A DNA stretch of 64,000 bases, taken from Haliotis cracherodii. Lineage: Eukaryota. This document shows positions 1-23,259 of the stretch, piece by piece. Position numbers and translations under genes: made by a program. Position 1 is the first letter of the stretch, and each line of letters begins with the position of its first letter. The notes below the pieces were generated by a model. That model was not told the DNA's origin. It did not search any database and was given only the letters and a program-made list of their open reading frames with translations. The stretch is taken from positions 68,448,001-68,512,000 of the forward strand of contig NW_027266286.1 in NCBI RefSeq assembly GCF_022045235.1, given 5' to 3'.

Positions 1-404
1 AACTGGGGGTCAAATCATGGGAAGTTCGAGTCAATATCATGCACACATTTTGGATCAAAACAAATTACCAACACAATACAATGTCCAATCTTGCATTTAA
101 GCTATCACAAGTCACTCCAAACATATCTGACACAGACTCAACAAGCCATTCAAACGGGGGACTATATTCTCCTATTTACCTTCCGGGTCATGGTAAAACT
201 TAGGGGACGTAACTGTGGTCTCGGGCCTAGTCTATCTTAGAGCGAATCTGCTCCTTGACCATTCATATTGCGCTGGACTCTTGAAAAAAACAGAAAACAA
301 ACCAATTGGATTTGGTTTAGAGTGGGCTTTCTCTTGAGATCGTGCCGTTGTATTGGTGGATCGCTGCTCAACTGTATAAGCTCTTAATTCTATCGGCATT
401 GCAT

Positions 405-452
405 GAGTGCATTGAGGCACGTGCCACAGTTTTATTTGGACATGCACACGGC
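405..452. promoter_or_regulatory. Candidate MRE / E-box / MRE module (repeated in each unit)
   Basis: GAGTGCA at 405-411 (TGCACTC on the minus strand), palindrome GGCACGTGCC at 416-425, TGCACACGGC at 443-452. Motif match only. Confidence 0.35.
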
Positions 453-737
453 TGTAATTATAAGCCAGGTGGACGTTTAGAGGCCATAATGATAGTACGA
501 TACTAAATGGGACTTCATGCATTTTCGGACAGAAACAGTCTACTTGCTTTGTTCAACATGTGTATAGGTTTATTGGCAGGCCTTCGAGGTTCCTAACCTT
601 GGTGGGAATGATTCCAAAGTGACAATCACTATGCAGGACACTGAAAAGTAAGTAGGGAAACTAGCTCATACAATCTTGAATTTGATTGTACTTGAAGAAA
701 ATATAACCAAAGATATATTTACAATATAAACCACAGC

Positions 738-743
738 TTTATT
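738..743 (-). terminator. Polyadenylation signal AATAAA (copy 1; repeated in each unit)
   Basis: tttatt at 738-743 on the plus strand, ~113 nt after the stop, followed on the minus strand by GT/T-rich sequence (gctgtggtttatattgtaaatatatctttggttatattttc). Confidence 0.75.
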
Positions 744-855
744 TGTACTCGTTGAGAAATAGACAGAATGAATGGATGCAGCATGGTGAGTGCAATCGAC
801 AAATATGATATCAAATGTCCAGCACTTGATGTGAATATGATGATCCTTGAATCTT

Positions 856-1460
856 TTAACCGTGGTGTCCGCCTCCATGACCACCACCTCCATGACCACC
901 TCCTCCGTGACCACCTCCTCCGTGGCCACCACCTCCGTGTCCTCCTCCTCCTCCTCCATGGCCACCACCTCCGTGTCCTCCTCCTCCTCCTCCTCCATGG
1001 CCACCACCTCCGTGTCCTCCTCCTCCTCCTCCATGGCCACCACCTCCGTGACCTCCACCACCGTGACCGCCGCCTCCGTGACCACCACCACCACCACCGT
1101 GGCCGCCTCCGCCTCCGCCTCCGTGGCCTCCGCCTCCATGGCCGCCACCACCACCACCATGGCCACCAAGGGCGGAGCCAAGGAAGACTGTGAAGAATGT
1201 TCAGAAACAACAATACATAAGTGGTCATATATGACAGGATACACACACACACACACACAAAATCCGTCCACCATTCCTGATACAGTTTAGACCATGGTAG
1301 AAACTATCCTATTCATTACGTTGTCAGCAAATCGAAAAGCCACTTAAAACTCAGCAAGAGCTAATAAAGTTGATTATTACAAAGTTTAAGATTGCGAATT
1401 CTCATCAGATAAGGCACACTTACCCAAGACTACAACAACTGCAACGTTAAGAAGGCGCAT
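856..1460 (-). CDS. Secreted Gly/His-only polypeptide precursor, copy 1 (122 aa; join 1460..1424, 1187..856)
   Basis: ATG in context acaggATG; exon 1 encodes MRLLNVAVVVVL+G; donor G|GTAAGT; acceptor ttcttcacag|TC. Splicing restores the frame to VFLGSALG-GHG6HG4HG7H...G3HHG-TAA. TATA box upstream and AATAAA downstream. Confidence 0.93.
859..1166 (-). repeat. Coding GGN/CAY trinucleotide-based minisatellite (variable length between copies)
   Basis: Contains only GGA, GGT, GGC, CAT and CAC codons in copy 1. A ~36-bp module GGA GGT GGT GGC CAT (GGA)n CAC occurs 1-3 times depending on the copy. Confidence 0.95.
1188..1423 (-). other. Phase-1 spliceosomal intron inside the signal-peptide coding region (copy 1; 230-236 bp, present in every unit)
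   Basis: Perfect GTAAGT donor at 1423-1418; pyrimidine-rich ttgttgtttctgaacattcttcacAG acceptor ending at 1188; removal joins G+TC into a Val codon in frame. Confidence 0.9.
1241..1259. repeat. Intronic (AC)n microsatellite, n about 6-9 across copies
   Basis: acacacacacacacacaca; its length change explains intron sizes of 230, 232, 234 and 236 bp. Confidence 0.9.
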
Positions 1461-1502
1461 CCTGTCAGTTACGTTGTTTATCCACGAGAGAATAAACAAT
1501 TT

Positions 1503-1537
1503 AAATGTCTCTTTTGGGATTCACACCGCCTTATATA
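1503..1537 (-). promoter_or_regulatory. Pol II core promoter: TATA box plus Inr-like start site (copy 1; repeated in each unit)
   Basis: TATATAAG at 1537-1530 on the minus strand. An Inr-like CA(+1)TTT has its A at 1506, 31 nt from the first T of the TATA box, giving a ~46-nt 5'UTR. Confidence 0.75.
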
Positions 1538-1578
1538 CATGTGGTACAGGAAATCAGGATGTTGAATGTAAATGCCCA

Positions 1579-1611
1579 CATTGGAAGATTTTAGTAAATA
1601 AAATTCCAATG
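1579..1611. promoter_or_regulatory. Inverted pair of CCAAT-containing 8-mers at about -75 and -100
   Basis: cattggaa (1579-1586) and ttccaatg (1604-1611) are exact reverse complements at typical CCAAT-box distance from the inferred start site. Confidence 0.35.
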
Positions 1612-3661
1612 AGACTTTTTACAACTTTAGAGCGTGAAGAATGAATCTCTATTTTGTAATATCACATACGACACTGCCACCTGCCTCTCTGTATTAGGCA
1701 TATCTTCCTGCATAATTATTAAATGCAAACTGTGTATTTGTGACCTAACCTGGCACCCTGTGGCTATCTCACTGCCGGGAAGCATGATAGATTTAGTGGT
1801 TCATCCAATGCAATTACAGCTACAGACCATTTTGTGAAAAACTTGAATGGAGATAGAATATTTTAAATGAAGGATAAATGCTGACCTTTAGAATTTCGTT
1901 GGGTGCAAGTACTGAGTCTACTGAGCTACCATGACTTGGAGTCAAAGGACGTTTATCAACGTATGTCAAATACGTCTTTAAAAGCAGAGGTTGTGGGAAG
2001 CTAATTATTCATCTATTCATAATCAAACTTTATGTGAAGTTGGATTTTTCAAGTGTGTGATATATTTCAAAGTTTGAATACCTGCCCGAATAATTTCAAA
2101 GTCTCATTATTTTCTACAATAAAACAGGGTGAAAGCTGATGATATACGCTCTTTGGTTTTCTGGCCTATAACACATGAATGAACACAGGGAAATCATTCC
2201 ATCCCTGCCCACATTACTTTTCAAAGGAACTCTTCCATCTAAGTTTATCTCGTGCGTATATATGTGTGTGTTTGGGAGTGTTTGGGAGAGAAAGTTCACG
2301 TCACATTTTATGCTATTTCGTAACTGGCCCAAACACTAAACAATGATGAAATGCATGAACCTTTTCTAAAGAGTGGTAAAATCTCAGCTTTCGAACACCA
2401 CATGTGGACAGGATATACTTATCCATCACACGAATACCTGATGAAACCACTATCTCCGCAGGAACATGGATGTGGTGGTAGTTTATGACAGGCACTAGGG
2501 GCTTCAACCGTCAATCTATGACCCATGTATGACCCCCTTCCTGCCAAGCATTACCCACACCCACCCACCAAGCTACAGCACCAGAGATGAACATTCATCT
2601 GGCGTCAGAGCACAATTATTCGTCATTCTTTGCTATCTACAGTGGCATGCCAATTCATACTGATTAATATCGCCCTTGCTGACTAACCTGTTACTTATCA
2701 TTTGAACAGCAAAATACCAGTCTGGGTCCACCAGCTCGACTTCCAAGTAAACGCTGTCAACAACGGTCACTGAAAGTATCGAGCCGAAACACACCCATCG
2801 GCCTTCAACTGGGGGTCAAATCATGGGAAGTTCGAGTCAATATCATGCACACATTTTGGATCAAAACAAATTACCAACACAATACAATGTCCAATCTTGC
2901 ATTTAAGCTATCACAAGTCACTCCAAACATATCTGACACAGACTCAACAAGCCATTCAAACGGGGGACTATATTCTCCTATTTACCTTCCGGGTCATGGT
3001 AAAACTTAGGGGACGTAACTGTGGTCTCGGGCCTAGTCTATCTTAGAGCGAATCTGCTCCTTGACCATTCATATTGCGCTGGACTCTTGAAAAAAACAGA
3101 AAACAAACCAATTGGATTTGGTTTAGAGTGGGCTTTCTCTTGAGATCGTGCCGTTGTATTGGTGGATCGCTGCTCAACTGTATAAGCTCTTAATTCTATC
3201 GGCATTGCATGAGTGCATTGAGGCACGTGCCACAGTTTTATTTGGACATGCACACGGCTGTAATTATAAGCCAGGTGGACGTTTAGAGGCCATAATGATA
3301 GTACGATACTAAATGGGACTTCATGCATTTTCGGACAGAAACAGTCTACTTGCTTTGTTCAACATGTGTATAGGTTTATTGGCAGGCCTTCGAGGTTCCT
3401 AACCTTGGTGGGAATGATTCCAAAGTGACAATCACTATGCAGGACACTGAAAAGTAAGTAGGGAAACTAGCTCATACAATCTTGAATTTGATTGTACTTG
3501 AAGAAAATATAACCAAAGATATATTTACAATATAAACCACAGCTTTATTTGTACTCGTTGAGAAATAGACAGAATGAATGGATGCAGCATGGTGAGTGCA
3601 ATCGACAAATATGATATCAAATGTCCAGCACTTGATGTGAATATGATGATCCTTGAATCTT

Positions 3662-4266
3662 TTAACCGTGGTGTCCGCCTCCATGACCACCACCTCCATG
3701 ACCACCTCCTCCGTGACCACCTCCTCCGTGGCCACCACCTCCGTGTCCTCCTCCTCCTCCTCCATGGCCACCACCTCCGTGTCCTCCTCCTCCTCCTCCT
3801 CCATGGCCACCACCTCCGTGTCCTCCTCCTCCTCCTCCATGGCCACCACCTCCGTGACCTCCACCACCGTGACCGCCGCCTCCGTGACCACCACCACCAC
3901 CACCGTGGCCGCCTCCGCCTCCGCCTCCGTGGCCTCCGCCTCCATGGCCGCCACCACCACCACCATGGCCACCAAGGGCGGAGCCAAGGAAGACTGTGAA
4001 GAATGTTCAGAAACAACAATACATAAGTGGTCATATATGACAGGATACACACACACACACACACAAAATCCGTCCACCATTCCTGATACAGTTTAGACCA
4101 TGGTAGAAACTATCCTATTCATTACGTTGTCAGCAAATCGAAAAGCCACTTAAAACTCAGCAAGAGCTAATAAAGTTGATTATTACAAAGTTTAAGATTG
4201 CGAATTCTCATCAGATAAGGCACACTTACCCAAGACTACAACAACTGCAACGTTAAGAAGGCGCAT
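3662..4266 (-). CDS. Gly/His polypeptide precursor, copy 2 (122 aa; join 4266..4230, 3993..3662)
   Basis: Same structure and protein as copy 1, offset 2806. Confidence 0.92.
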
Positions 4267-6467
4267 CCTGTCAGTTACGTTGTTTATCCACGAGAGAATA
4301 AACAATTTAAATGTCTCTTTTGGGATTCACACCGCCTTATATACATGTGGTACAGGAAATCAGGATGTTGAATGTAAATGCCCACATTGGAAGATTTTAG
4401 TAAATAAAATTCCAATGAGACTTTTTACAACTTTAGAGCGTGAAGAATGAATCTCTATTTTGTAATATCACATACGACACTGCCACCTGCCTCTCTGTAT
4501 TAGGCATATCTTCCTGCATAATTATTAAATGCAAACTGTGTATTTGTGACCTAACCTGGCACCCTGTGGCTATCTCACTGCCGGGAAGCATGATAGATTT
4601 AGTGGTTCATCCAATGCAATTACAGCTACAGACCGTTTTGTGAAAAACTTGAATGGAGATAGAATATTTTAAATGAAGGATAAATGCTGACCTTTAGAAT
4701 TTCGTTGGGTGCAAGTACTGAGTCTACTGAGCTACCATGACTTGGAGTCAAAGGACGTTTATCAACGTATGTCAAATACGTCTTTAAAAGCAGAGGTTGT
4801 GGGAAGCTAATTATTCATCTATTCATAATCAAACTTTATGTGAAGTTGGATTTTTCAAGTGTGTGATATATTTCAAAGTTTGAATACCTGCCCGAATAAT
4901 TTCAAAGTCTCATTATTTTCTACAATAAAACAGGGTGAAAGCTGATGATATACGCTCTTTGGTTTTCTGGCCTATAACACATGAATGAACACAGGGAAAT
5001 CATTCCATCCCTGCCCACATTACTTTTCAAAGGAACTCTTCCATCTAAGTTTATCTCGTGCGTATATATGTGTGTGTTTGGGAGTGTTTGGGAGAGAAAG
5101 TTCACGTCACATTTTATGCTATTTCGTAACTGGCCCAAACACTAAACAATGATGAAATGCATGAACCTTTTCTAAAGAGTGGTAAAATCTCAGCTTTCGA
5201 ACACCACATGTGGACAGGATATACTTATCCATCACACGAATACCTGATGAAACCACTATCTCCGCAGGAACATGGATGTGGTGGTAGTTTATGACAGGCA
5301 CTAGGGGCTTCAACCGTCAATCTATGACCCATGTATGACCCCCTTCCTGCCAAGCATTACCCACACCCACCCACCAAGCTACAGCACCAGAGATGAACAT
5401 TCATCTGGCGTCAGAGCACAATTATTCGTCATTCTTTGCTATCTACAGTGGCATGCCAATTCATACTGATTAATATCGCCCTTGCTGACTAACCTGTTAC
5501 TTATCATTTGAACAGCAAAATACCAGTCTGGGTCCACCAGCTCGACTTCCAAGTAAACGCTGTCAACAACGGTCACTGAAAGTATCGAGCCGAAACACAC
5601 CCATCGGCCTTCAACTGGGGGTCAAATCATGGGAAGTTCGAGTCAATATCATGCACACATTTTGGATCAAAACAAATTACCAACACAATACAATGTCCAA
5701 TCTTGCATTTAAGCTATCACAAGTCACTCCAAACATATCTGACACAGACTCAACAAGCCATTCAAACGGGGGACTATATTCTCCTATTTACCTTCCGGGT
5801 CATGGTAAAACTTAGGGGACGTAACTGTGGTCTCGGGCCTAGTCTATCTTAGAGCGAATCTGCTCCTTGACCATTCATATTGCGCTGGACTCTTGAAAAA
5901 AACAGAAAACAAACCAATTGGATTTGGTTTAGAGTGGGCTTTCTCTTGAGATCGTGCCGTTGTATTGGTGGATCGCTGCTCAACTGTATAAGCTCTTAAT
6001 TCTATCGGCATTGCATGAGTGCATTGAGGCACGTGCCACAGTTTTATTTGGACATGCACACGGCTGTAATTATAAGCCAGGTGGACGTTTAGAGGCCATA
6101 ATGATAGTACGATACTAAATGGGACTTCATGCATTTTCGGACAGAAACAGTCTACTTGCTTTGTTCAACATGTGTATAGGTTTATTGGCAGGCCTTCGAG
6201 GTTCCTAACCTTGGTGGGAATGATTCCAAAGTGACAATCACTATGCAGGACACTGAAAAGTAAGTAGGGAAACTAGCTCATACAATCTTGAATTTGATTG
6301 TACTTGAAGAAAATATAACCAAAGATATATTTACAATATAAACCACAGCTTTATTTGTACTCGTTGAGAAATAGACAGAATGAATGGATGCAGCATGGTG
6401 AGTGCAATCGACAAATATGATATCAAATGTCCAGCACTTGATGTGAATATGATGATCCTTGAATCTT

Positions 6468-7072
6468 TTAACCGTGGTGTCCGCCTCCATGACCACCACC
6501 TCCATGACCACCTCCTCCGTGACCACCTCCTCCGTGGCCACCACCTCCGTGTCCTCCTCCTCCTCCTCCATGGCCACCACCTCCGTGTCCTCCTCCTCCT
6601 CCTCCTCCATGGCCACCACCTCCGTGTCCTCCTCCTCCTCCTCCATGGCCACCACCTCCGTGACCTCCACCACCGTGACCGCCGCCTCCGTGACCACCAC
6701 CACCACCACCGTGGCCGCCTCCGCCTCCGCCTCCGTGGCCTCCGCCTCCATGGCCGCCACCACCACCACCATGGCCACCAAGGGCGGAGCCAAGGAAGAC
6801 TGTGAAGAATGTTCAGAAACAACAATACATAAGTGGTCATATATGACAGGATACACACACACACACACACAAAATCCGTCCACCATTCCTGATACAGTTT
6901 AGACCATGGTAGAAACTATCCTATTCATTACGTTGTCAGCAAATCGAAAAGCCACTTAAAACTCAGCAAGAGCTAATAAAGTTGATTATTACAAAGTTTA
7001 AGATTGCGAATTCTCATCAGATAAGGCACACTTACCCAAGACTACAACAACTGCAACGTTAAGAAGGCGCAT
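6468..7072 (-). CDS. Gly/His polypeptide precursor, copy 3 (122 aa; join 7072..7036, 6799..6468)
   Basis: Same structure and protein as copy 1. Confidence 0.92.
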
Positions 7073-9273
7073 CCTGTCAGTTACGTTGTTTATCCACGAG
7101 AGAATAAACAATTTAAATGTCTCTTTTGGGATTCACACCGCCTTATATACATGTGGTACAGGAAATCAGGATGTTGAATGTAAATGCCCACATTGGAAGA
7201 TTTTAGTAAATAAAATTCCAATGAGACTTTTTACAACTTTAGAGCGTGAAGAATGAATCTCTATTTTGTAATATCACATACGACACTGCCACCTGCCTCT
7301 CTGTATTAGGCATATCTTCCTGCATAATTATTAAATGCAAACTGTGTATTTGTGACCTAACCTGGCACCCTGTGGCTATCTCACTGCCGGGAAGCATGAT
7401 AGATTTAGTGGTTCATCCAATGCAATTACAGCTACAGACCGTTTTGTGAAAAACTTGAATGGAGATAGAATATTTTAAATGAAGGATAAATGCTGACCTT
7501 TAGAATTTCGTTGGGTGCAAGTACTGAGTCTACTGAGCTACCATGACTTGGAGTCAAAGGACGTTTATCAACGTATGTCAAATACGTCTTTAAAAGCAGA
7601 GGTTGTGGGAAGCTAATTATTCATCTATTCATAATCAAACTTTATGTGAAGTTGGATTTTTCAAGTGTGTGATATATTTCAAAGTTTGAATACCTGCCCG
7701 AATAATTTCAAAGTCTCATTATTTTCTACAATAAAACAGGGTGAAAGCTGATGATATACGCTCTTTGGTTTTCTGGCCTATAACACATGAATGAACACAG
7801 GGAAATCATTCCATCCCTGCCCACATTACTTTTCAAAGGAACTCTTCCATCTAAGTTTATCTCGTGCGTATATATGTGTGTGTTTGGGAGTGTTTGGGAG
7901 AGAAAGTTCACGTCACATTTTATGCTATTTCGTAACTGGCCCAAACACTAAACAATGATGAAATGCATGAACCTTTTCTAAAGAGTGGTAAAATCTCAGC
8001 TTTCGAACACCACATGTGGACAGGATATACTTATCCATCACACGAATACCTGATGAAACCACTATCTCCGCAGGAACATGGATGTGGTGGTAGTTTATGA
8101 CAGGCACTAGGGGCTTCAACCGTCAATCTATGACCCATGTATGACCCCCTTCCTGCCAAGCATTACCCACACCCACCCACCAAGCTACAGCACCAGAGAT
8201 GAACATTCATCTGGCGTCAGAGCACAATTATTCGTCATTCTTTGCTATCTACAGTGGCATGCCAATTCATACTGATTAATATCGCCCTTGCTGACTAACC
8301 TGTTACTTATCATTTGAACAGCAAAATACCAGTCTGGGTCCACCAGCTCGACTTCCAAGTAAACGCTGTCAACAACGGTCACTGAAAGTATCGAGCCGAA
8401 ACACACCCATCGGCCTTCAACTGGGGGTCAAATCATGGGAAGTTCGAGTCAATATCATGCACACATTTTGGATCAAAACAAATTACCAACACAATACAAT
8501 GTCCAATCTTGCATTTAAGCTATCACAAGTCACTCCAAACATATCTGACACAGACTCAACAAGCCATTCAAACGGGGGACTATATTCTCCTATTTACCTT
8601 CCGGGTCATGGTAAAACTTAGGGGACGTAACTGTGGTCTCGGGCCTAGTCTATCTTAGAGCGAATCTGCTCCTTGACCATTCATATTGCGCTGGACTCTT
8701 GAAAAAAACAGAAAACAAACCAATTGGATTTGGTTTAGAGTGGGCTTTCTCTTGAGATCGTGCCGTTGTATTGGTGGATCGCTGCTCAACTGTATAAGCT
8801 CTTAATTCTATCGGCATTGCATGAGTGCATTGAGGCACGTGCCACAGTTTTATTTGGACATGCACACGGCTGTAATTATAAGCCAGGTGGACGTTTAGAG
8901 GCCATAATGATAGTACGATACTAAATGGGACTTCATGCATTTTCGGACAGAAACAGTCTACTTGCTTTGTTCAACATGTGTATAGGTTTATTGGCAGGCC
9001 TTCGAGGTTCCTAACCTTGGTGGGAATGATTCCAAAGTGACAATCACTATGCAGGACACTGAAAAGTAAGTAGGGAAACTAGCTCATACAATCTTGAATT
9101 TGATTGTACTTGAAGAAAATATAACCAAAGATATATTTACAATATAAACCACAGCTTTATTTGTACTCGTTGAGAAATAGACAGAATGAATGGATGCAGC
9201 ATGGTGAGTGCAATCGACAAATATGATATCAAATGTCCAGCACTTGATGTGAATATGATGATCCTTGAATCTT

Positions 9274-9874
9274 TTAACCGTGGTGTCCGCCTCCATGACC
9301 ACCACCTCCATGACCACCTCCTCCGTGACCACCTCCTCCGTGGCCACCACCTCCGTGTCCTCCTCCTCCTCCTCCATGGCCACCACCTCCGTGTCCTCCT
9401 CCTCCTCCTCCTCCATGGCCACCACCTCCGTGTCCTCCTCCTCCTCCTCCATGGCCACCACCTCCGTGACCTCCACCACCGTGACCGCCGCCTCCGTGAC
9501 CACCACCACCACCACCGTGGCCGCCTCCGCCTCCGCCTCCGTGGCCTCCGCCTCCATGGCCGCCACCACCACCACCATGGCCACCAAGGGCGGAGCCAAG
9601 GAAGACTGTGAAGAATGTTCAGAAACAACAATACATAAGTGGTCATATATGACAGGATACACACACACACACAAAATCCGTCCACCATTCCTGATACAGT
9701 TTAGACCATGGTAGAAACTATCCTATTCATTACGTTGTCAGCAAATCGAAAAGCCACTTAAAACTCAGCAAGAGCTAATAAAGTTGATTATTACAAAGTT
9801 TAAGATTGCGAATTCTCATCAGATAAGGCACACTTACCCAAGACTACAACAACTGCAACGTTAAGAAGGCGCAT
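9274..9874 (-). CDS. Gly/His polypeptide precursor, copy 4 (122 aa; join 9874..9838, 9605..9274)
   Basis: Same protein as copy 1; intron is 232 bp because of a shorter CA repeat. Confidence 0.92.
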
Positions 9875-12075
9875 CCTGTCAGTTACGTTGTTTATCCACG
9901 AGAGAATAAACAATTTAAATGTCTCTTTTGGGATTCACACCGCCTTATATACATGTGGTACAGGAAATCAGGATGTTGAATGTAAATGCCCACATTGGAA
10001 GATTTTAGTAAATAAAATTCCAATGAGACTTTTTACAACTTTAGAGCGTGAAGAATGAATCTCTATTTTGTAATATCACATACGACACTGCCACCTGCCT
10101 CTCTGTATTAGGCATATCTTCCTGCATAATTATTAAATGCAAACTGTGTATTTGTGACCTAACCTGGCACCCTGTGGCTATCTCACTGCCGGGAAGCATG
10201 ATAGATTTAGTGGTTCATCCAATGCAATTACAGCTACAGACCGTTTTGTGAAAAACTTGAATGGAGATAGAATATTTTAAATGAAGGATAAATGCTGACC
10301 TTTAGAATTTCGTTGGGTGCAAGTACTGAGTCTACTGAGCTACCATGACTTGGAGTCAAAGGACGTTTATCAACGTATGTCAAATACGTCTTTAAAAGCA
10401 GAGGTTGTGGGAAGCTAATTATTCATCTATTCATAATCAAACTTTATGTGAAGTTGGATTTTTCAAGTGTGTGATATATTTCAAAGTTTGAATACCTGCC
10501 CGAATAATTTCAAAGTCTCATTATTTTCTACAATAAAACAGGGTGAAAGCTGATGATATACGCTCTTTGGTTTTCTGGCCTATAACACATGAATGAACAC
10601 AGGGAAATCATTCCATCCCTGCCCACATTACTTTTCAAAGGAACTCTTCCATCTAAGTTTATCTCGTGCGTATATATGTGTGTGTTTGGGAGTGTTTGGG
10701 AGAGAAAGTTCACGTCACATTTTATGCTATTTCGTAACTGGCCCAAACACTAAACAATGATGAAATGCATGAACCTTTTCTAAAGAGTGGTCAAATCTCA
10801 GCTTTCGAACACCACATGTGGACAGGATATACTTATCCATCACACGAATACCTGATGAAACCACTATCTCCGCAGGAACATGGATGTGGTGGTAGTTTAT
10901 GACAGGCACTAGGGGCTTCAACCGTCAATCTATGACCCATGTATGACCCCCTTCCTGCCAAGCATTACCCACACCCACCCACCAAGCTACAGCACCAGAG
11001 ATGAACATTCATCTGGCGTCAGAGCACAATTATTCGTCATTCTTTGCTATCTACAGTGGCATGCCAATTCATACTGATTAATATCGCCCTTGCTGACTAA
11101 CCTGTTACTTATCATTTGAACAGCAAAATACCAGTCTGGGTCCACCAGCTCGACTTCCAAGTAAACGCTGTCAACAACGGTCACTGAAAGTATCGAGCCG
11201 AAACACACCCATCGGCCTTCAACTGGGGGTCAAATCATGGGAAGTTCGAGTCAATATCATGCACACATTTTGGATCAAAACAAATTACCAACACAATACA
11301 ATGTCCAATCTTGCATTTAAGCTATCACAAGTCACTCCAAACATATCTGACACAGACTCAACAAGCCATTCAAACGGGGGACTATATTCTCCTATTTACC
11401 TTCCGGGTCATGGTAAAACTTAGGGGACGTAACTGTGGTCTCGGGCCTAGTCTATCTTAGAGCGAATCTGCTCCTTGACCATTCATATTGCGCTGGACTC
11501 TTGAAAAAAACAGAAAACAAACCAATTGGATTTGGTTTAGAGTGGGCTTTCTCTTGAGATCGTGCCGTTGTATTGGTGGATCGCTGCTCAACTGTATAAG
11601 CTCTTAATTCTATCGGCATTGCATGAGTGCATTGAGGCACGTGCCACAGTTTTATTTGGACATGCACACGGCTGTAATTATAAGCCAGGTGGACGTTTAG
11701 AGGCCATAATGATAGTACGATACTAAATGGGACTTCATGCATTTTCGGACAGAAACAGTCTACTTGCTTTGTTCAACATGTGTATAGGTTTATTGGCAGG
11801 CCTTCGAGGTTCCTAACCTTGGTGGGAATGATTCCAAAGTGACAATCACTATGCAGGACACTGAAAAGTAAGTAGGGAAACTAGCTCATACAATCTTGAA
11901 TTTGATTGTACTTGAAGAAAATATAACCAAAGATATATTTACAATATAAACCACAGCTTTATTTGTACTCGTTGAGAAATAGACAGAATGAATGGATGCA
12001 GCATGGTGAGTGCAATCGACAAATATGATATCAAATGTCCAGCACTTGATGTGAATATGATGATCCTTGAATCTT

Positions 12076-12680
12076 TTAACCGTGGTGTCCGCCTCCATGA
12101 CCACCACCTCCATGACCACCTCCTCCGTGACCACCTCCTCCGTGGCCACCACCTCCGTGTCCTCCTCCTCCTCCTCCATGGCCACCACCTCCGTGTCCTC
12201 CTCCTCCTCCTCCTCCATGGCCACCACCTCCGTGTCCTCCTCCTCCTCCTCCATGGCCACCACCTCCGTGACCTCCACCACCGTGACCGCCGCCTCCGTG
12301 ACCACCACCACCACCACCGTGGCCGCCTCCGCCTCCGCCTCCGTGGCCTCCGCCTCCATGGCCGCCACCACCACCACCATGGCCACCAAGGGCGGAGCCA
12401 AGGAAGACTGTGAAGAATGTTCAGAAACAACAATACATAAGTGGTCATATATGACAGGATACACACACACACACACACAAAATCCGTCCACCATTCCTGA
12501 TACAGTTTAGACCATGGTAGAAACTATCCTATTCATTACGTTGTCAGCAAATCGAAAAGCCACTTAAAACTCAGCAAGAGCTAATAAAGTTGATTATTAC
12601 AAAGTTTAAGATCGCGAATTCTCATCAGATAAGGCACACTTACCCAAGACTACAACAACTGCAACGTTAAGAAGGCGCAT
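12076..12680 (-). CDS. Gly/His polypeptide precursor, copy 5 (122 aa; join 12680..12644, 12407..12076)
   Basis: Same structure and protein as copy 1. Confidence 0.92.
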
Positions 12681-14868
12681 CCTGTCAGTTACGTTGTTTA
12701 TCCACGAGAGAATAAACAATTTAAATGTCTCTTTTGGGATTCACACCGCCTTATATACATGTGGTACAGGAAATCAGGATGTTGAATGTAAATGCCCACA
12801 TTGGAAGATTTTAGTAAATAAAATTCCAATGAGACTTTTTACAACTTTAGAGCGTGAAGAATGAATCTCTATTTTGTAATATCACATACGACACTGCCAC
12901 CTGCCTCTCTGTATTAGGCATATCTTCCTGCATAATTATTAAATGCAAACTGTGTATTTGTGACCTAACCTGGCACCCTGTGGCTATCTCACTGCCGGGA
13001 AGCATGATAGATTTAGTGGTTCATCCAATGCAATTACAGCTACAGACCGTTTTGTGAAAAACTTGAATGGAGATAGAATATTTTAAATGAAGGATAAATG
13101 CTGACCTTTAGAATTTCGTTGGGTGCAAGTACTGAGTCTACTGAGCTACCATGACTTGGAGTCAAAGGACGTTTATCAACGTATGTCAAATACGTCTTTA
13201 AAAGCAGAGGTTGTGGGAAGCTAATTATTCATCTATTCATAATCAAACTTTATGTGAAGTTGGATTTTTCAAGTGTGTGATATATTTCAAAGTTTGAATA
13301 CCTGCCCGAATAATTTCAAAGTCTCATTATTTTCTACAATAAAACAGTGTGAAAGCTGATGATATACGCTCTTTGGTTTTCTGGCCTATAACACATGAAT
13401 GAACACAGGGAAATCATTCCATCCCTGCCCACATTACTTTTCAAAGGAACTCTTCCATCTAAGTTTATCTCGTGCGTATATATGTGTGTGTTTGGGAGTG
13501 TTTGGGAGAGAAAGTTCACGTCACATTTTATGCTATTTCGTAACTGGCCCAAACACTAAACAATGATGAAATGCATGAACCTTTTCTAAAGAGTGGTAAA
13601 ATCTCAGCTTGTGGACAGGATATACTTATCCATCACACGAATACCTGATGAAACCACTATCTCCGCAGGAACATGGATGTGGTGGTAGTTTATGACAGGC
13701 ACTAGGGGCTTCAACCGTCAATCTATGACCCATGTATGACCCCCTTCCTGCCAAGCATTACCCACACCCACCCACCAAGCTACAGCACCAGAGATGAACA
13801 TTCATCTGGCGTCAGAGCACAATTATTCGTCATTCTTTGCTATCTACAGTGGCATGCCAATTCATACTGATTAATATCGCCCTTGCTGACTAACCTGTTA
13901 CTTATCATTTGAACAGCAAAATACCAGTCTTGGTCCACCAGCTCGACTTCCAAGTAAACGCTGTCAACAACGGTCACTGAAAGTATCGAGCCGAAACACA
14001 CCCATCGGCCTTCAACTGGGGGTCTAATCATGGGAAGTTCGAGTCAATATCATGCACACATTTTGGATCAAAACAAATTACCAACACAATACAATGTCCA
14101 ATCTTGCATTTAAGCTATCACAAGTCACTCCAAACATATCTGACACAGACTCAACAAGCCATTCAAACGGGGGACTATATTCTCCTATTTACCTTCCGGG
14201 TCATGGTAAAACTTAGGGGACGTAACTGTGGTCTCGGGCCTAGTCTATCTTAGAGCGAATCTGCTCCTTGACCATTCATATTGCGCTGGACTCTTGAAAA
14301 AAACAGAAAACAAACCAATTGGATTTGGTTTAGAGTGGGCTTTCTCTTGAGATCGTGCCGTTGTATTGGTGGATCGCTGCTCAACTGTATAAGCTCTTAA
14401 TTCTATCGGCATTGCATGAGTGCATTGAGGCACGTGCCACAGTTTTATTTGGACATGCACACGGCTGTAATTATAAGCCAGGTGGACGTTTAGAGGCCAT
14501 AATGATAGTACGATACTAAATGGGACTTCATGCATTTTCGGACAGAAACAGTCTACTTGCTTTGTTCAACATGTGTATAGGTTTATTGGCAGGCCTTCGA
14601 GGTTCCTAACCTTGGTGGGAATGATTCCAAAGTGACAATCACTATGCAGGACACTGAAAAGTAAGTAGGGAAACTAGCTCATACAATCTTGAATTTGATT
14701 GTACTTGAAGAAAATATAACCAAAGATATATTTACAATATAAACCACAGCTTTATTTGTACTCGTTGAGAAATAGACAGAATGAATGGATGCAGCATGGT
14801 GAGTGCAATCGACAAATATGATATCAAATGTCCAGCACTTGATGTGAATATGATGATCCTTGAATCTT

Positions 14869-15453
14869 TTAACCGTGGTGTCCGCCTCCATGACCACCAC
14901 CTCCATGACCACCTCCTCCGTGACCACCACCTCCGTGTCCTCCTCCTCCTCCTCCATGGCCACCACCTCCGTGTCCTCCTCCTCCTCCTCCATGGCCACC
15001 ACCTCCGTGTCCTCCTCCTCCTCCTCCGTGGCCACCACCTCCGTGACCTCCACCACCGTGACCGCCGCCTCCGTGACCACCACCACCACCACCGTGGCCG
15101 CCTCCGCCTCCGCCTCCGTGGCCTCCGCCTCCATGGCCGCCACCACCACCACCATGGCCACCAAGGGCTGAGCCAAGGAAGACTGTGAAGAATGTTCAGA
15201 AACAACAATACATAAGTGGTCATATATGACAGGATACACACACACACACACAAAATCCGTCCACCATTCCTGATACAGTTTAGACCATGGTAGAAACTAT
15301 CCTATTCATTACGTTGTCAGCAAATCGAAAAGCCACTTAAAACTCAGCAAGAGCTAATAAAGTTGATTATTACAAAGTTTAAGATTGCGAATTCTCATCA
15401 GATAAGGCACACTTACCCAAGACTACAACAACTGCAACGTTAAGAAGGCGCAT
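14869..15453 (-). CDS. Gly/His polypeptide precursor, copy 6 (116 aa; join 15453..15417, 15182..14869)
   Basis: Splice sites intact; net 18-bp in-frame shortening of the repeat region; synonymous TCC>TCA in the signal peptide. Confidence 0.9.
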
Positions 15454-17654
15454 CCTGTCAGTTACGTTGTTTATCCACGAGAGAATAAACAATTTAAATG
15501 TCTCTTTTGGGATTCACACCGCCTTATATACATGTGGTACAGGAAATCAGGATGTTGAATGTAAATGCCCACATTGGAAGATTTTAGTAAATAAAATTCC
15601 AATGAGACTTTTTACAACTTTAGAGCGTGAAGAATGAATCTCTATTTTGTAATATCACATACGACACTGCCACCTGCCTCTCTGTATTAGGCATATCTTC
15701 CTGCATAATTATTAAATGCAAACTGTGTATTTGTGACCTAACCTGGCACCCTGTGGTTATCTCACTGCCGGGAAGCATGATAGATTTAGTGGTTCATCCA
15801 ATGCAATTACAGCTACAGACCGTTTTGTGAAAAACTTGAATGGAGATAGAATATTTTAAATGAAGGATAAATGCTGACCTTTAGAATTTCGTTGGGTGCA
15901 AGTACTGAGTCTACTGAGCTACCATGACTTGGAGTCAAAGGACGTTTATCAACGTATGTCAAATACGTCTTTAAAAGCAGAGGTTGTGGGAAGCTAATTA
16001 TTCATCTATTCATAATCAAACTTTATGTGAAGTTGGATTTTTCAAGTGTGTGATATATTTCAAAGTTTGAATACCTGCCCGAATAATTTCAAAGTCTCAT
16101 TTTTTTCTACAATAAAACAGGGTGAAAGCTGATGATATACGCTCTTTGGTTTTCTGGCCTATAACACATGAATGAACACAGGGAAATCATTCCATCCCTG
16201 CCCACATTACTTTTCAAAGGAACTCTTCCATCTAAGTTTATCTCGTGCGTATATATGTGTGTGTTTGGGAGTGTTTGGGAGAGAAAGTTCACGTCACATT
16301 TTATGCTATTTCGTAACTGGCCCAAACACTAAACAATGATGAAATGCATGAACCTTTTCTAAAGAGTGGTAAAATCTCAGCTTTCGAACACCACATGTGG
16401 ACAGGATATACTTATCCATCACACGAATACCTGATGAAACCACTATCTCCGCAGGAACATGGATGTGGTGGTAGTTTATGACAGGCACTAGGGGCTTCAA
16501 CCGTCAATCTATGACCCATGTATGACCCCCTTCCTGCCAAGCATTACCCACACCCACCCACCAAGCTACAGCACCAGAGATGAACATTCATCTGGCGTCA
16601 GAGCACAATTATTCGTCATTCTTTGCTATCTACAGTGGCATGCCAATTCATACTGATTAATATCGCCCTTGCTGACTAACCTGTTACTTATCATTTGAAC
16701 AGCAAAATACCAGTCTTGGTCCACCAGCTCGACTTCCAAGAAAACGCTGTCAACAACGGTCACTGAAAGTATCGAGCCGAAACACACCCATCGGCCTTCA
16801 ACTGGGGGTCTAATCATGGGAAGTTCGAGTCAATATCATGCACACATTTTGGATCAAAACAAATTACCAACACAATACAATGTCCAATCTTGCATTTAAG
16901 CTATCACAAGTCACTCCAAACATATCTGACACAGACTCAACAAGCCATTCAAACGGGGGACTATATTCTCCTATTTACCTTCCGGGTCATGGTAAAACTT
17001 AGGGGACGTAACTGTGGTCTCGGGCCTAGTCTATCTTAGAGCGAATCTGCTCCTTGACCATTCATATTGCGCTGGACTCTTGAAAAAAACAGAAAACAAA
17101 CCAATTGGATTTGGTTTAGAGTGGGCTTTCTCTTGAGATCGTGCCGTTGTATTGGTGGATCGCTGCTCAACTGTATAAGCTCTTAATTCTATCGGCATTG
17201 CATGAGTGCATTGAGGCACGTGCCACAGTTTTATTTGGACATGCACACGGCTGTAATTATAAGCCAGGTGGACGTTTAGAGGCCATAATGATAGTACGAT
17301 ACTAAATGGGACTTCATGCATTTTCGGACAGAAACAGTCTACTTGCTTTGTTCAACATGTGTATAGGTTTATTGGCAGGCCTTCGAGGTTCCTAACCTTG
17401 GTGGGAATGATTCCAAAGTGACAATCACTATGCAGGACACTGAAAAGTAAGTAGGGAAACTAGCTCATACAATCTTGAATTTGATTGTACTTGAAGAAAA
17501 TATAACCAAAGATATATTTACAATATAAACCACAGCTTTATTTGTACTCGTTGAGAAATAGACAGAATGAATGGATGCAGCATGGTGAGTGCAATCGACA
17601 AATATGATATCAAATGTCCAGCACTTGATGTGAATATGATGATCCTTGAATCTT

Positions 17655-18257
17655 TTAACCGTGGTGTCCGCCTCCATGACCACCACCTCCATGACCACCT
17701 CCTCCGTGACCACCTCCTCCGTGGCCACCACCTCCGTGTCCTCCTCCTCCTCCTCCATGGCCACCACCTCCGTGTCCTCCTCCTCCTCCTCCTCCATGGC
17801 CACCACCTCCGTGTCCTCCTCCTCCTCCTCCATGGCCACCACCTCCGTGACCTCCACCACCGTGACCGCCGCCTCCGTGACCACCACCACCACCACCGTG
17901 GCCGCCTCCGCCTCCGCCTCCGTGGCCTCCGCCTCCATGGCCGCCACCACCACCACCATGGCCACCAAGGGCTGAGCCAAGGAAGACTGTGAAGAATGAT
18001 CAGAAACAACAATACATAAGTGGTCATATATGACAGGATACACACACACACACACAAAATCCGTCCACCATTCCTGATACAGTTTAGACCATGGTAGAAA
18101 CTATCCTATTCATTACGTTGTCAGCAAATCGAAAAGCCACTTAAAACTCAGCAAGAGCTAATAAAGTTGATTATTACAAAGTTTAAGATTGCGAATTCTC
18201 ATCAGATAAGGCACACTTACCCAAGACTACAACAACTGCAACGTTAAGAAGGCGCAT
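17655..18257 (-). CDS. Gly/His polypeptide precursor, copy 7 (122 aa; join 18257..18221, 17986..17655)
   Basis: Start, splice sites and stop are intact. Confidence 0.9.
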
Positions 18258-20458
18258 CCTGTCAGTTACGTTGTTTATCCACGAGAGAATAAACAATTTA
18301 AATGTCTCTTTTGGGATTCACACCGCCTTATATACATGTGGTACAGGAAATCAGGATGTTGAATGTAAATGCCCACATTGGAAGATTTTAGTAAATAAAA
18401 TTCCAATGAGACTTTTTACAACTTTAGAGCGTGAAGAATGAATCTCTATTTTGTAATATCACATACGACACTGCCACCTGCCTCTCTGTATTAGGCATAT
18501 CTTCCTGCATAATTATTAAATGCAAACTGTGTATTTGTGACCTAACCTGGCACCCTGTGGCTATCTCACTGCCGGGAAGCATGATAGATTTAGTGGTTCA
18601 TCCAATGCAATTACAGCTACAGACCGTTTTGTGAAAAACTTGAATGGAGATAGAATATTTTAAATGAAGGATAAATGCTGACCTTTAGAATTTCGTTGGG
18701 TGCAAGTACTGAGTCTACTGAGCTACCATGACTTGGAGTCAAAGGACGTTTATCAACGTATGTCAAATACGTCTTTAAAAGCAGAGGTTGTGGGAAGCTA
18801 ATTATTCATCTATTCATAATCAAACTTTATGTGAAGTTGGATTTTTCAAGTGTGTGATATATTTCAAAGTTTGAATACCTGCCCGAATAATTTCAAAGTC
18901 TCATTATTTTCTACAATAAAACAGGGTGAAAGCTGATGATATACGCTCTTTGGTTTTCTGGCCTATAACACATGAATGAACACAGGGAAATCATTCCATC
19001 CCTGCCCACATTACTTTTCAAAGGAACTCTTCCATCTAAGTTTATCTCGTGCGTATATATGTGTGTGTTTGGGAGTGTTTGGGAGAGAAAGTTCACGTCA
19101 CATTTTATGCTATTTCGTAACTGGCCCAAACACTAAACAATGATGAAATGCATGAACCTTTTCTAAAGAGTGGTAAAATCTCAGCTTTCGAACACCACAT
19201 GTGGACAGGATATACTTATCCATCACACGAATACCTGATGAAACCACTATCTCCGCAGGAACATGGATGTGGTGGTAGTTTATGACAGGCACTAGGGGCT
19301 TCAACCGTCAATCTATGACCCATGTATGACCCCCTTCCTGCCAAGCATTACCCACACCCACCCACCAAGCTACAGCACCAGAGATGAACATTCATCTGGC
19401 GTCAGAGCACAATTATTCGTCATTCTTTGCTATCTACAGTGGCATGCCAATTCATACTGATTAATATCGCCCTTGCTGACTAACCTGTTACTTATCATTT
19501 GAACAGCAAAATACCAGTCTTGGTCCACCAGCTCGACTTCCAAGTAAACGCTGTCAACAACGGTCACTGAAAGTATCGAGCCGAAACACACCCATCGGCC
19601 TTCAACTGGGGGTCAAATCATGGGAAGTTCGAGTCAATATCATGCACACATTTTGGATCAAAACAAATTACCAACACAATACAATGTCCAATCTTGCATT
19701 TAAGCTATCACAAGTCACTCCAAACATATCTGACACAGACTCAACAACCCATTCAAACGGGGGACTATATTCTCCTATTTACCTTCCGGGTCATGGTAAA
19801 ACTTAGGGGACGTAACTGTGGTCTCGGGCCTAGTCTATCTTAGAGCGAATCTGCTCCTTGACCATTCATATTGCGCTGGACTCTTGAAAAAAACAGAAAA
19901 CAAACCAATTGGATTTGGTTTAGAGTGGGCTTTCTCTTGAGATCGTGCCGTTGTATTGGTGGATCGCTGCTCAACTGTATAAGCTCTTAATTCTATCGGC
20001 ATTGCATGAGTGCATTGAGGCACGTGCCACAGTTTTATTTGGACATGCACACGGCTGTAATTATAAGCCAGGTGGACGTTTAGAGGCCATAATGATAGTA
20101 CGATACTAAATGGGACTTCATGCATTTTCGGACAGAAACAGTCTACTTGCTTTGTTCAACATGTGTATAGGTTTATTGGCAGGCCTTCGAGGTTCCTAAC
20201 CTTGGTGGGAATGATTCCAAAGTGACAATCACTATGCAGGACACTGAAAAGTAAGTAGGGAAACTAGCTCATACAATCTTGAATTTGATTGTACTTGAAG
20301 AAAATATAACCAAAGATATATTTACAATATAAACCACAGCTTTATTTGTACTCGTTGAGAAATAGACAGAATGAATGGATGCAGCATGGTGAGTGCAATC
20401 GACAAATATGATATCAAATGTCCAGCACTTGATGTGAATATGATGATCCTTGAATCTT

Positions 20459-21058
20459 TTAACCGTGGTGTCCGCCTCCATGACCACCACCTCCATGACC
20501 ACCTCCTCCGTGACCACCTCCTCCGTGGCCACCACCTCCGTGTCCTCCTCCTCCTCCTCCATGGCCACCACCTCCGTGTCCTCCTCCTCCTCCTCCATGG
20601 CCACCACCTCCGTGTCCTCCTCCTCCTCCTCCATGGCCACCACCTCCGTGACCTCCACCACCGTGACCGCCGCCTCCGTGACCACCACCACCACCACCGT
20701 GGCCGCCTCCGCCTCCGCCTCCGTGGCCTCCGCCTCCATGGCCGCCACCACCACCACCATGGCCACCAAGGGCTGAGCCAAGGAAGACTGTGAAGAATGT
20801 TCAGAAACAACAATACATAAGTGGTCATATATGACAGGATACACACACACACACACAAAATCCGTCCACCATTCCTGATACAGTTTAGACCATGGTAGAA
20901 ACTATCCTATTCATTACGTTGTCAGCAAATCGAAAAGCCACTTAAAACTCAGCAAGAGCTAATAAAGTTGATTATTACAAAGTTTAAGATTGCGAATTCT
21001 CATCAGATAAGGCACACTTACCCAAGACTACAACAACTGCAACGTTAAGAAGGCGCAT
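20459..21058 (-). CDS. Gly/His polypeptide precursor, copy 8 (121 aa; join 21058..21022, 20787..20459)
   Basis: Intact; one GGA codon fewer than copy 1. Confidence 0.9.
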
Positions 21059-23259
21059 CCTGTCAGTTACGTTGTTTATCCACGAGAGAATAAACAATTT
21101 AAATGTCTCTTTTGGGATTCACACCGCCTTATATACATGTGGTACAGGAAATCAGGATGTTGAATGTAAATGCCCACATTGGAAGATTTTAGTAAATAAA
21201 ATTCCAATGAGACTTTTTACAACTTTAGAGCGTGAAGAATGAATCTCTATTTTGTAATATCACATACGACACTGCCACCTGCCTCTCTGTATTAGGCATA
21301 TCTTCCTGCATAATTATTAAATGCAAACTGTGTATTTGTGACCTAACCTGGCACCCTGTGGCTATCTCACTGCCGGGAAGCATGATAGATTTAGTGGTTC
21401 ATCCAATGCAATTACAGCTACAGACCGTTTTGTGAAAAACTTGAATGGAGATAGAATATTTTAAATGAAGGATAAATGCTGACCTTTAGAATTTCGTTGG
21501 GTGCAAGTACTGAGTCTACTGAGCTACCATGACTTGGAGTCAAAGGACGTTTATCAACGTATGTCAAATACGTCTTTAAAAGCAGAGGTTGTGGGAAGCT
21601 AATTATTCATCTATTCATAATCAAACTTTATGTGAAGTTGGATTTTTCAAGTGTGTGATATATTTCAAAGTTTGAATACCTGCCCGAATAATTTCAAAGT
21701 CTCATTATTTTCTACAATAAAACAGGGTGAAAGCTGATGATATACGCTCTTTGGTTTTCTGGCCTATAACACATGAATGAACACAGGGAAATCATTCCAT
21801 CCCTGCCCACATTACTTTTCAAAGGAACTCTTCCATCTAAGTTTATCTCGTGCGTATATATGTGTGTGTTTGGGAGTGTTTGGGAGAGAAAGTTCACGTC
21901 ACATTTTATGCTATTTCGTAACTGGCCCAAACACTAAACAATGATGAAATGCATGAACCTTTTCTAAAGAGTGGTCAAATCTCAGCTTTCGAACACCACA
22001 TGTGGACAGGATATACTTATCCATCACACGAATACCTGATGAAACCACTATCTCCGCAGGAACATGGATGTGGTGGTAGTTTATGACAGGCACTAGGGGC
22101 TTCAACCGTCAATCTATGACCCATGTATGACCCCCTTCCTGCCAAGCATTACCCACACCCACCCACCAAGCTACAGCACCAGAGATGAACATTCATCTGG
22201 CGTCAGAGCACAATTATTCGTCATTCTTTGCTATCTACAGTGGCATGCCAATTCATACTGATTAATATCGCCCTTGCTGACTAACCTGTTACTTATCATT
22301 TGAACAGCAAAATACCAGTCTTGGTCCACCAGCTCGACTTCCAAGTAAACGCTGTCAACAACGGTCACTGAAAGTATCGAGCCGAAACACACCCATCGGC
22401 CTTCAACTGGGGGTCAAATCATGGGAAGTTCGAGTCAATATCATGCACACATTTTGGATCAAAACAAATTACCAACACAATACAATGTCCAATCTTGCAT
22501 TTAAGCTATCACAAGTCACTCAAAACATATCTGACACAGACTCTACAACCCATTCAAACGGGGGACTATATTCTCCTATTTACCTTCCGGGTCATGGTAA
22601 AACTTAGGGGACGTAACTGTGGTCTCGGGCCTAGTCTATCTTAGAGCGAATCTGCTCCTTGACCATTCATATTGCGCTGGACTCTTGAAAAAAACAGAAA
22701 ACAAACCAATTGGATTTGGTTTAGAGTGGGCTTTCTCTTGAGATCGTGCCGTTGTATTGGTGGATCGCTGCTCAACTGTATAAGCTCTTAATTCTATCGG
22801 CATTGCATGAGTGCATTGAGGCACGTGCCACAGTTTTATTTGGACATGCACACGGCTGTAATTATAAGCCAGGTGGACGTTTAGAGGCCATAATGATAGT
22901 ACGATACTAAATGGGACTTCATGCATTTTCGGACAGAAACAGTCTACTTGCTTTGTTCAACATGTGTATAGGTTTATTGGCAGGCCTTCGAGGTTCCTAA
23001 CCTTGGTGGGAATGATTCCAAAGTGACAATCACTATGCAGGACACTGAAAAGTAAGTAGGGAAACTAGCTCATACAATCTTGAATTTGATTGTACTTGAA
23101 GAAAATATAACCAAAGATATATTTACAATATAAACCACAGCTTTATTTGTACTCGTTGAGAAATAGACAGAATGAATGGATGCAGCATGGTGAGTGCAAT
23201 CGACAAATATGATATCAAATGTCCAGCACTTGATGTGAATATGATGATCCTTGAATCTT

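Follow-up and report, generated by a model that had tools for sequence, protein, structure and literature searches.

The black abalone (Haliotis cracherodii) DNA analysed here, a stretch of 64,000 nucleotides (G000:C23:68448001-68512000, referred to as the window), raises the question of whether a tract of glycine and histidine codons on the minus strand at positions 738-1537 belongs to a real gene, and what the product of such a gene would do. The original prediction, made from the sequence alone, had assigned this tract to a hidden spliced gene for a secreted polypeptide consisting only of Gly and His, and had placed a TATA box, an initiator-like site, an ATG, a GT-AG intron, a stop codon and an AATAAA signal on the minus strand. 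All of these signals are present with canonical spacing, and the observation of a hidden spliced Gly/His gene is confirmed. The accompanying interpretation, which took the product for a possible Cu/Zn-binding structural or antimicrobial polypeptide, is supported in part. The gene is repeated in two arrays, one on contig C23, which contains the window, and the other on contig C16, from a different chromosome. The explanation that we favour, with confidence a little above even, is that the 48 genes of the former and the 16 genes of the latter constitute a real, transcribed two-exon family of the black abalone, that both arrays evolve in concert, and that the product is a bulk extracellular material switched by pH and metal ions. 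The gene model of the copy at positions 738-1537 (copy 1) is as follows, with splice boundaries marked by a slash.

1537-1531, minus strand: TATA box (TATATAA), read directly and present in the C16 paralogue too
1506, minus strand: A of an initiator-like CA(+1)TTT, 31 nt 3' of the start of the TATA box
1461..1506, minus strand: predicted 5' untranslated region (UTR) of about 46 nt, placed from spacing alone
1460-1458, minus strand: ATG, with A at position -3
1424..1460, minus strand: coding part of exon 1, 37 nt (Met, 11 signal-peptide residues and one base)
1423-1422, minus strand: GT of the donor TGG/GTAAGT
1188..1423, minus strand: intron (GTAAGT...CAG) of 236 nt, 230-236 nt in other copies
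1189-1188, minus strand: AG of the acceptor ttcttcacAG/, with a pyrimidine tract preceding CAG
856..1187, minus strand: coding part of exon 2 (the last 8 signal-peptide residues, then 102 Gly/His residues with an HHG end)
858-856, minus strand: stop codon TAA
738..855, minus strand: 3' UTR, with AATAAA at 743-738

When copy 1 is spliced by a local script, it encodes 122 residues, consisting of a 20-residue signal-like head followed exclusively by Gly (83 residues) and His (19 residues), and the computed mass of the mature chain is 7358.9 Da. These counts are identical to those obtained earlier by hand, from which a mass of about 7.4 kDa had been estimated. The 43-nt motif extending from the ATG to the donor occurs 23 times in the window, versus 0 occurrences expected, and is thus far too frequent to be accidental. 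The spliced frame is open in 22 of the 23 copies (97-125 residues). The intron contains a (GT)n microsatellite at window 1233-1260, and the range of intron sizes among the copies probably results from variation in (GT)n length.

The Gly/His frame of exon 2 contains no in-frame ATG, GTG or TTG and is missing from the mechanical list of open reading frames (ORFs). Because this frame has no start codon of its own, it can be translated only through a splice from exon 1. In the repeat, five of six frames are listed as open, including two other minus-strand frames, so that openness by itself is no proof of coding, and the flanking signals and the evolution of the sequence must carry the argument. 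The other open frames over the repeat were rejected as coding, because it is only in the Gly/His frame that codon positions 1 and 2 are fixed and position 3 is variable.

The window contains 23 head-to-tail units of about 2.8 kb (spacing 2.73-2.81 kb), each with one gene and all on the minus strand of 1..64000. With the flanks added for array-wide counts, the full C23 array consists of 48 units over about 135 kb (G000:C23:68440505-68573606), and its ATGs extend from 68441043 to 68573606. Forty-seven of the 48 frames are intact; the array encodes 25 distinct proteins of 97-125 residues, most commonly 121-123. The single broken copy carries a nonsense codon (GGA to TGA) at 37425-37423 of the window, minus strand. 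Other amino acids (Arg, Ala, Phe, Asp, Ser, Val or Glu) occur only singly and at scattered positions, in 14 of the 48 copies. Exon 1 does not vary among the 23 window copies, except for one substitution in the copy at 59986. The units of the C23 array are about 99.3% identical over their full length including the spacer, with a mean pairwise difference of 0.1-1.8% per 100-nt bin. The array is, as judged from this uniformity, either homogenised by concerted evolution or very young. Because the units are uniform everywhere, comparisons within the array carry no sign of constraint.

Exon 1, sought as a pattern across the whole genome, is found at 65 places, which are the 48 units of the C23 array, 16 units on C16 and one plus-strand copy at C23:68712077. 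The conserved 3' end (HGGGHHG followed by the stop codon) gives 65 matches, all on the minus strand, which are the 48 units of the C23 array, the 16 units on C16 and one relic. This relic, which corresponds to the 3' half of a unit, lies at C23:68587117-68587500 (locus L025), about 13 kb past the end of the array, and exon 1 is absent from it. The lone copy on the plus strand (C23:68712077-68712119), 138 kb from the array, consists of an inverted promoter and exon 1, and is about 100% identical to a 221-nt query. It is probably a fragment, because no matching 3' end is found on the plus strand.

The C16 array (G000:C16:4974305-5021576, with exon-1 matches at 4974902-5021576) consists of 16 units with a spacing of about 3.1 kb and was not noticed in the original prediction. 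These units were counted by exon-1 and 3'-end matches, four of them were read (loci L033-L036) and three were translated. The C16 and C23 units agree in TATA box, 5' UTR, stop context and AATAAA; exon 1 of the C16 units differs from that of the C23 units by one synonymous change, and the C16 intron (GTACGT..CAG) is 230 nt long. The C16 products (124-139 residues) are composed of Gly and His with 2-3 Lys residues, which occur in a GGGKGH motif, and therefore contain tryptic sites, unlike the C23-type products. Gly makes up 81% and His 19% of the C23 type; in the C16 type, the shares are 75% Gly, 23% His and 2% Lys.

The C23 and C16 arrays differ from each other by 11% upstream of the gene (the 130 nt 5' of the ATG are 89% identical), by 14% in the intron, by 16% in the 3' flank and by up to about 30% in the spacer. 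The two kinds of unit are homologous throughout; the identity is mostly 68-90% per 100-nt bin, with one poorly aligned bin of 47%, and BLAST blocks are 77-82% identical. The Gly/His-coding DNA of the two arrays is merely 71-79% identical, yet the products contain only 0 and 2-3 residues other than Gly and His. At a neutral divergence of 11-16%, 21-29 of every 100 codons are expected to be changed at position 1 or 2, and the probability of three or fewer such changes is 2e-7 to 9e-12. The relic serves as a control for neutral decay: of its last 125 codons, about 19 are foreign and 3 are in-frame stops. The two arrays have diverged and both remain near-pure in Gly and His, while the relic has decayed; this comparison points to selection on composition. 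A contig of run X17, from a related species, has all five of its coding substitutions at third codon positions (p=0.004), and its coding indels are 18, 18 and 9 nt long. Protein-level constraint on the Gly/His frame is thus found both between the arrays and in X17, and selection on the Gly/His composition rather than on the exact sequence is well supported by these comparisons.

The codons used for Gly in the 47 intact C23 copies are GGA (1625), GGT (1388), GGC (725) and GGG (1), and those used for His are CAC (552) and CAT (315). Only 1 of the 3739 Gly codons of the C23 array is GGG, and the GGG trinucleotide is absent in any frame from the coding DNA of copy 1 (window 856-1164) and from that of the C16 unit in L034. 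Since copies within one array are not independent, this absence represents two observations. It suggests that G-triplets are avoided in the coding DNA, perhaps because of G-quadruplexes or slippage, which would be selected against in the G-rich coding strand.

The sequence of the window is found by a run search in 10 genome-sized DNA runs of the black abalone and in runs of five other species. Five runs of 49-114 Mb of contigs hold 32-40% of the query words; their size is typical of a transcriptome, and their RNA nature is guessed from it. Four of these runs (X15, X16, X17 and X19) were compared over window 500-1800 by contig depth. X15 and X19 (91 and 76 Mb of contigs) are from the same study. 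The depths are as follows.

X15: 3' exon contig, 498; intron contig, 15; upstream spacer, 7
X19: 3' exon contig, 232; intron contig, 30; upstream spacer, no coverage
X16: 3' exon contig, about 7; intron contig, about 8; upstream spacer, about 8
X17: 3' exon contig, about 5; intron contig, about 5; upstream spacer, about 3

The depth of the exon contig exceeds that of the intron contig by 33-fold in X15 and by 8-fold in X19, and the excess of exon over intron or spacer is 8- to 70-fold. Because the parts of a unit are equal in DNA copy number, an exon depth that is so much higher points to RNA. In both X15 and X19, the intron contig ends at 1453, which lies inside exon 1 and corresponds to 1423+30 (k-1, with k=31) as counted from the predicted donor. 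A break at this position indicates that there is a second sequence form which is the same through exon 1 and diverges at the donor, as expected of a spliced message. The contigs of X16 and X17 continue through 1453 unbroken, and the paralogue differences at 1446 and 1420 would place contig breaks elsewhere. The high-depth contigs of X15 and X19 span the 3' UTR and end near 734 and 731. The contigs are uninformative on the start, end and strand of the transcript. Transcription of the gene in some samples is supported indirectly by these depths and by the break at the donor.

The signal peptide, as identified by inspection, consists of Met-Arg, 13 hydrophobic residues (mean Kyte-Doolittle value 3.19) and Gly-Ser-Ala-Leu-Gly, and has small residues at -3 and -1 (Ala-x-Gly). 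In the mature C23-type chain, runs of 3-9 Gly residues alternate with single His residues up to the HHG end. The His-His spacings of copy 1 are 5 (ten times), 7 (four times), 8 (twice), 4 (once) and 1 (once), and none of them is 3. Each of the 64 complete copies, and the relic too, retains the C-terminal Gly; a Gly at this position is a substrate for peptide amidation. The mature chains of the window copies contain no aromatic residue, save one Phe in a single copy. AlphaFold2 gives a mean predicted local distance difference test (pLDDT) score of 50 and no secondary structure for exon 2. The computed isoelectric point is 7.53, and the computed charge is +14.3 at pH 5.5, +4.3 at pH 6.5, +0.1 at pH 7.5 and -0.7 at pH 8.1. 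The C23-type product is invisible to proteomics based on trypsin, and it may be masked in annotation.

According to the favoured explanation, each unit would be transcribed from its own TATA promoter into a message of about 0.55 kb, which would be translated into a precursor of 97-139 residues. The 20-residue signal peptide would route the product into the secretory pathway, and cleavage after Ala-Leu-Gly would free a disordered chain of 77-119 residues, in which about 19 imidazoles would serve as a switch that responds to pH and metal ions. Inside the secretory granules, which are acidic, the chain would be charged at about +14 and soluble. Upon release into seawater or haemolymph (pH 7.5-8.1), it would lose its charge, and the neutral chain would condense through hydrogen bonds between Gly-Gly backbones and through His-Zn/Cu bridges into a gel, a coacervate or a solid. 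The high gene dose would serve bulk output. Each type of trigger has a precedent, because squid beak His-rich proteins condense in response to pH, Nvjp-1 assembles in response to Zn or pH, and the multi-tasking protein (MTP) of Glycera undergoes phase separation in response to Cu (PMC9999432). Among the possible functions, a role as a bulk material or matrix seems preferable and would take slightly less than half of the odds, because the gene dose is very high, the chain is neutral at seawater pH and it has no amphipathic or cationic character. It is possible, but rather doubtful, that the 64 genes make a self-assembling, pH/metal-switched and GGG-avoiding two-letter Gly/His polymer that would represent a molluscan structural class without relatives and the simplest natural protein material.

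Several results weigh against the favoured explanation. No contig or read spanning the exon 1-exon 2 junction (GTAGTCTTGG/TCTTCCTTGG) is seen in the runs compared. The intron contigs end on the acceptor side at 1163 and 1146, versus 1159 expected by k-mer logic, and other branch points are present there. The high-depth contig of X15 and X19 combines the Lys motif known from the C16 type with a 3' UTR like that of the window; the form most expressed in the species of X15 and X19 would then appear to resemble the C16 type in the repeat and the window in the 3' UTR, with the arrays sorted differently there. The RNA nature of X15 and X19 is itself a guess, and three RNA-labelled runs of the black abalone contain zero query words, which suggests that expression is restricted, or absent in these three samples. 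With respect to the product, the chain is without Tyr or 3,4-dihydroxyphenylalanine (DOPA), the cross-linking residues of known hard-tissue proteins, and the conserved C-terminal Gly is a classic amidation signal, which is more usual in bioactive peptides than in structural proteins.

An unlikely explanation, though one with more in its favour than the two discussed below, is that the product serves in defence, as a secreted antifungal or antibacterial peptide rich in Gly and His, of the holotricin-3, tenecin-3 or shepherin kind, which would act by binding Zn or Cu or as a cation in acidic compartments. The binding of Zn and Cu would then result in metal withholding or in metal-induced fibrils, and the arrays would give a high or copy-number-variable dosage. 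Such peptides are the best match in composition and size: holotricin-3 is about 84 residues long and has the G3H kind of repeat that is also found in the C16 type (PMC5715947), and shepherin I (68% Gly and 29% His) is antifungal as Zn-induced fibrils (PMC10698721). The small precursor with a signal peptide, as identified by inspection, and the possible amidation signal at the C terminus of all 64 copies agree with this explanation, as does a Gly/His/Lys-bearing peptide detected in garden-snail mucus by de novo mass spectrometry (PMC8945727). However, a membrane-active mode is unlikely, because the chain is uncharged at the pH of seawater and haemolymph and has no hydrophobic or aromatic residues, and a nematode Gly/His peptide shows no antibacterial activity in an assay (PMC10414684). 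In addition, 64 near-identical genes are an unusually high dose for an antimicrobial peptide, and sequence homology cannot be shown. A soluble secreted buffer for metals (Cu, Zn or Ni) or protons, which would function in copper handling for haemocyanin, in detoxification or in proton uptake during shell calcification, is improbable. It would account for the 19 imidazoles per 7.4-kDa chain, which with a pKa near 6-7 would buffer strongly at about pH 6-7.5, and for the N-terminal Gly-His that would be exposed by a cut after Ala-Leu-Gly. An N-terminal Gly-His can bind Cu(II), as it does in the tripeptide GHK. However, the long Gly runs are conserved though they are useless for metal binding and buffering, and known metal carriers do not need 64 genes.

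It is very improbable that the 2.8-kb unit is a non-functional satellite-like repeat, in which a (GGN)n tract is open by chance next to promoter-like and splice-like signals, or a recently dead amplified gene. Such an origin would be compatible with the fact that five of the six frames of the repeat are open, with the 99.3% identity of the units throughout, which leaves no internal signal of constraint, with in-frame indels, which are also predicted by slippage of codon repeats, and with the lack of a junction read in the runs compared. However, two arrays whose coding identity is 71-79% share exon 1, the splice sites, the TATA box, the stop codon and a pure Gly/His frame, whereas a copy that is truly dead, the relic, has decayed. 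The confinement of variation to third codon positions, and the 8- to 70-fold excess of exon depth over intron and spacer in two runs with a break exactly at the donor, likewise argue against it.

The favoured explanation and the defence explanation both draw on known Gly/His-rich proteins. An HMMER-based protein search with exon 2 as a query gives no match at E<=0.001, and at E<=10 it gives two unrelated proteins with short G4H runs. The same query gives 0 matches against protein representatives and no usable match in the ESM Atlas. Exon 2 alone was the query, and these blanks reflect the correction for composition bias on a two-letter sequence and are not evidence of absence; equally, alignments between two-letter repeats carry no homology information. 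Full-text literature searches give no abalone or gastropod Gly/His protein; the one near-match is the garden-snail mucus peptide, which contains a G4HG4K stretch (PMC8945727).

Holotricin-3 (Holotrichia diomphalia) and tenecin-3 (Tenebrio molitor) are, like the predicted abalone product, secreted, disordered chains of about 80 residues, which are dominated by Gly and contain regularly spaced single His residues. Holotricin-3 has G3H repeats, as in the C16 paralogue, and GGHHGG near its own C-terminal end (PMC5715947). These two proteins also contain Tyr, Pro, Gln, Asn, Arg, Ser and Phe, whereas the abalone C23 type is 100% Gly/His. They are antifungal proteins from another phylum (insects), whereas the abalone genes are in arrays of 48 and 16 copies. 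Shepherins I and II (shep-GRP, Capsella bursa-pastoris) consist nearly entirely of Gly (about 66-68%) and His (21-29%), bind Zn and Cu and form Zn-induced fibrils (PMC10698721). They are, however, strict GGH tripeptide repeats of 28-38 residues in which Tyr is present, whereas the abalone chain has no His-His spacing of 3 and is 77-119 residues long. The shep-GRP precursor is, like the predicted abalone precursor, about 120 residues long with a signal peptide. Shepherins are excised from it as several peptides, whereas the abalone C23 type has no linker residues or internal processing sites. Because the shepherins are from a plant and the abalone is a mollusc, any likeness between them is convergent.

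The MTP of Glycera dibranchiata is, like the predicted abalone product, a secreted low-complexity Gly/His protein with a signal peptide, and its imidazoles recruit Cu, which leads to phase separation and the formation of a material (PMC9999432). However, MTP is a 30-kDa protein with 49% Gly, 40% His, no Gly run longer than 2 and both acidic and basic residues, whereas the abalone chain has a mass of 7.36 kDa and Gly runs of 3-9 residues, and its C23 type has no charged residues besides His. The Nereis proteins Nvjp-1 and Nai11527 are secreted and His/Gly-rich, and assemble when the pH rises to the seawater level or when Zn is added (PMC9999432, PMC13120676). They are 32-53 kDa in mass and contain 27-36% Gly and 16-27% His plus Asp, Glu and Tyr, and thus do not have a two-letter composition. 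The histidine-rich beak proteins (HBPs) of squid provide a molluscan precedent for secreted Gly/His repeats, in that His is their sole ionisable residue and they are acid-soluble and condense near neutral pH (PMC9999432). However, HBPs have GHGXY and GAGFA pentapeptides and their phase separation depends on Tyr, whereas the abalone chain has no such repeats and no aromatic or hydrophobic residues. The defining sequence features of shepherins, MTP and squid beak proteins were all sought in the abalone chain and are absent from it, in agreement with the original prediction, which did not recognise the sequence as any of them. Among known proteins, holotricin-3 and the shepherins are closest by composition and size, and Glycera MTP, Nvjp-1 and the squid HBPs by the proposed mechanism. 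The abalone family is set apart from them by its two-letter purity, by its two concerted arrays (64 genes) and by selection on composition, not on sequence.

With respect to gene organisation, the abalone arrays are similar to concertedly evolving tandem families of the histone and antifreeze type, because each head-to-tail unit contains a complete gene and the likeness within an array is much greater than that between arrays. Seven successive units at G000:C23:68521981-68541577 are exactly 2799 bp apart and encode identical 121-residue proteins, and the C23 array would accordingly seem to grow, or to be homogenised, in blocks. One unit (G000:C23:68566723-68570824) is 4101 bp long, versus about 2800 bp for the others, and its own spacer is duplicated internally by 1.3 kb. 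A transposon insertion was rejected as the cause, because the extra 1.3 kb is this internal spacer duplication. A GC periodicity of 14 kb was rejected as a higher-order repeat, because it results from aliasing of the 2.0-kb sampling windows with the 2.8-kb unit. Rfam and tRNA scans of two units give no match, the unit spacer contains no ORF of more than 96 residues and none that is conspicuous, and the flanks of the C23 array contain no recognisable neighbour gene among the ORFs of at least 130 residues. In the C16 array, a 176-nt insertion relative to the C23 unit is found just past the poly(A) signal of one unit (L034, minus strand, 2298-2473). Its ends resemble inverted repeats, and it may be a small mobile element.

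To our knowledge, natural proteins of just two amino acids are very rare. Secreted Gly/His-rich proteins are models both for metal-hardened non-mineral biomaterials, such as worm jaws and squid beak, and for Zn-dependent antifungals. A 7-kDa chain consisting only of Gly and His would be a minimal natural template with which the spacing of imidazoles in poly-Gly could be related to assembly triggered by pH and metal ions, and the abalone chain is short enough for direct synthesis. The family also illustrates that an abundant gene product can stay hidden under the combined effect of low-complexity masking, ORF finders that depend on a start codon and trypsin proteomics. To genome biology, it provides a clean case of two arrays in concerted evolution in which composition alone is conserved. 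For the biology of the abalone, it draws attention to a secretory product that is unstudied, made at high output and probably tissue-specific.

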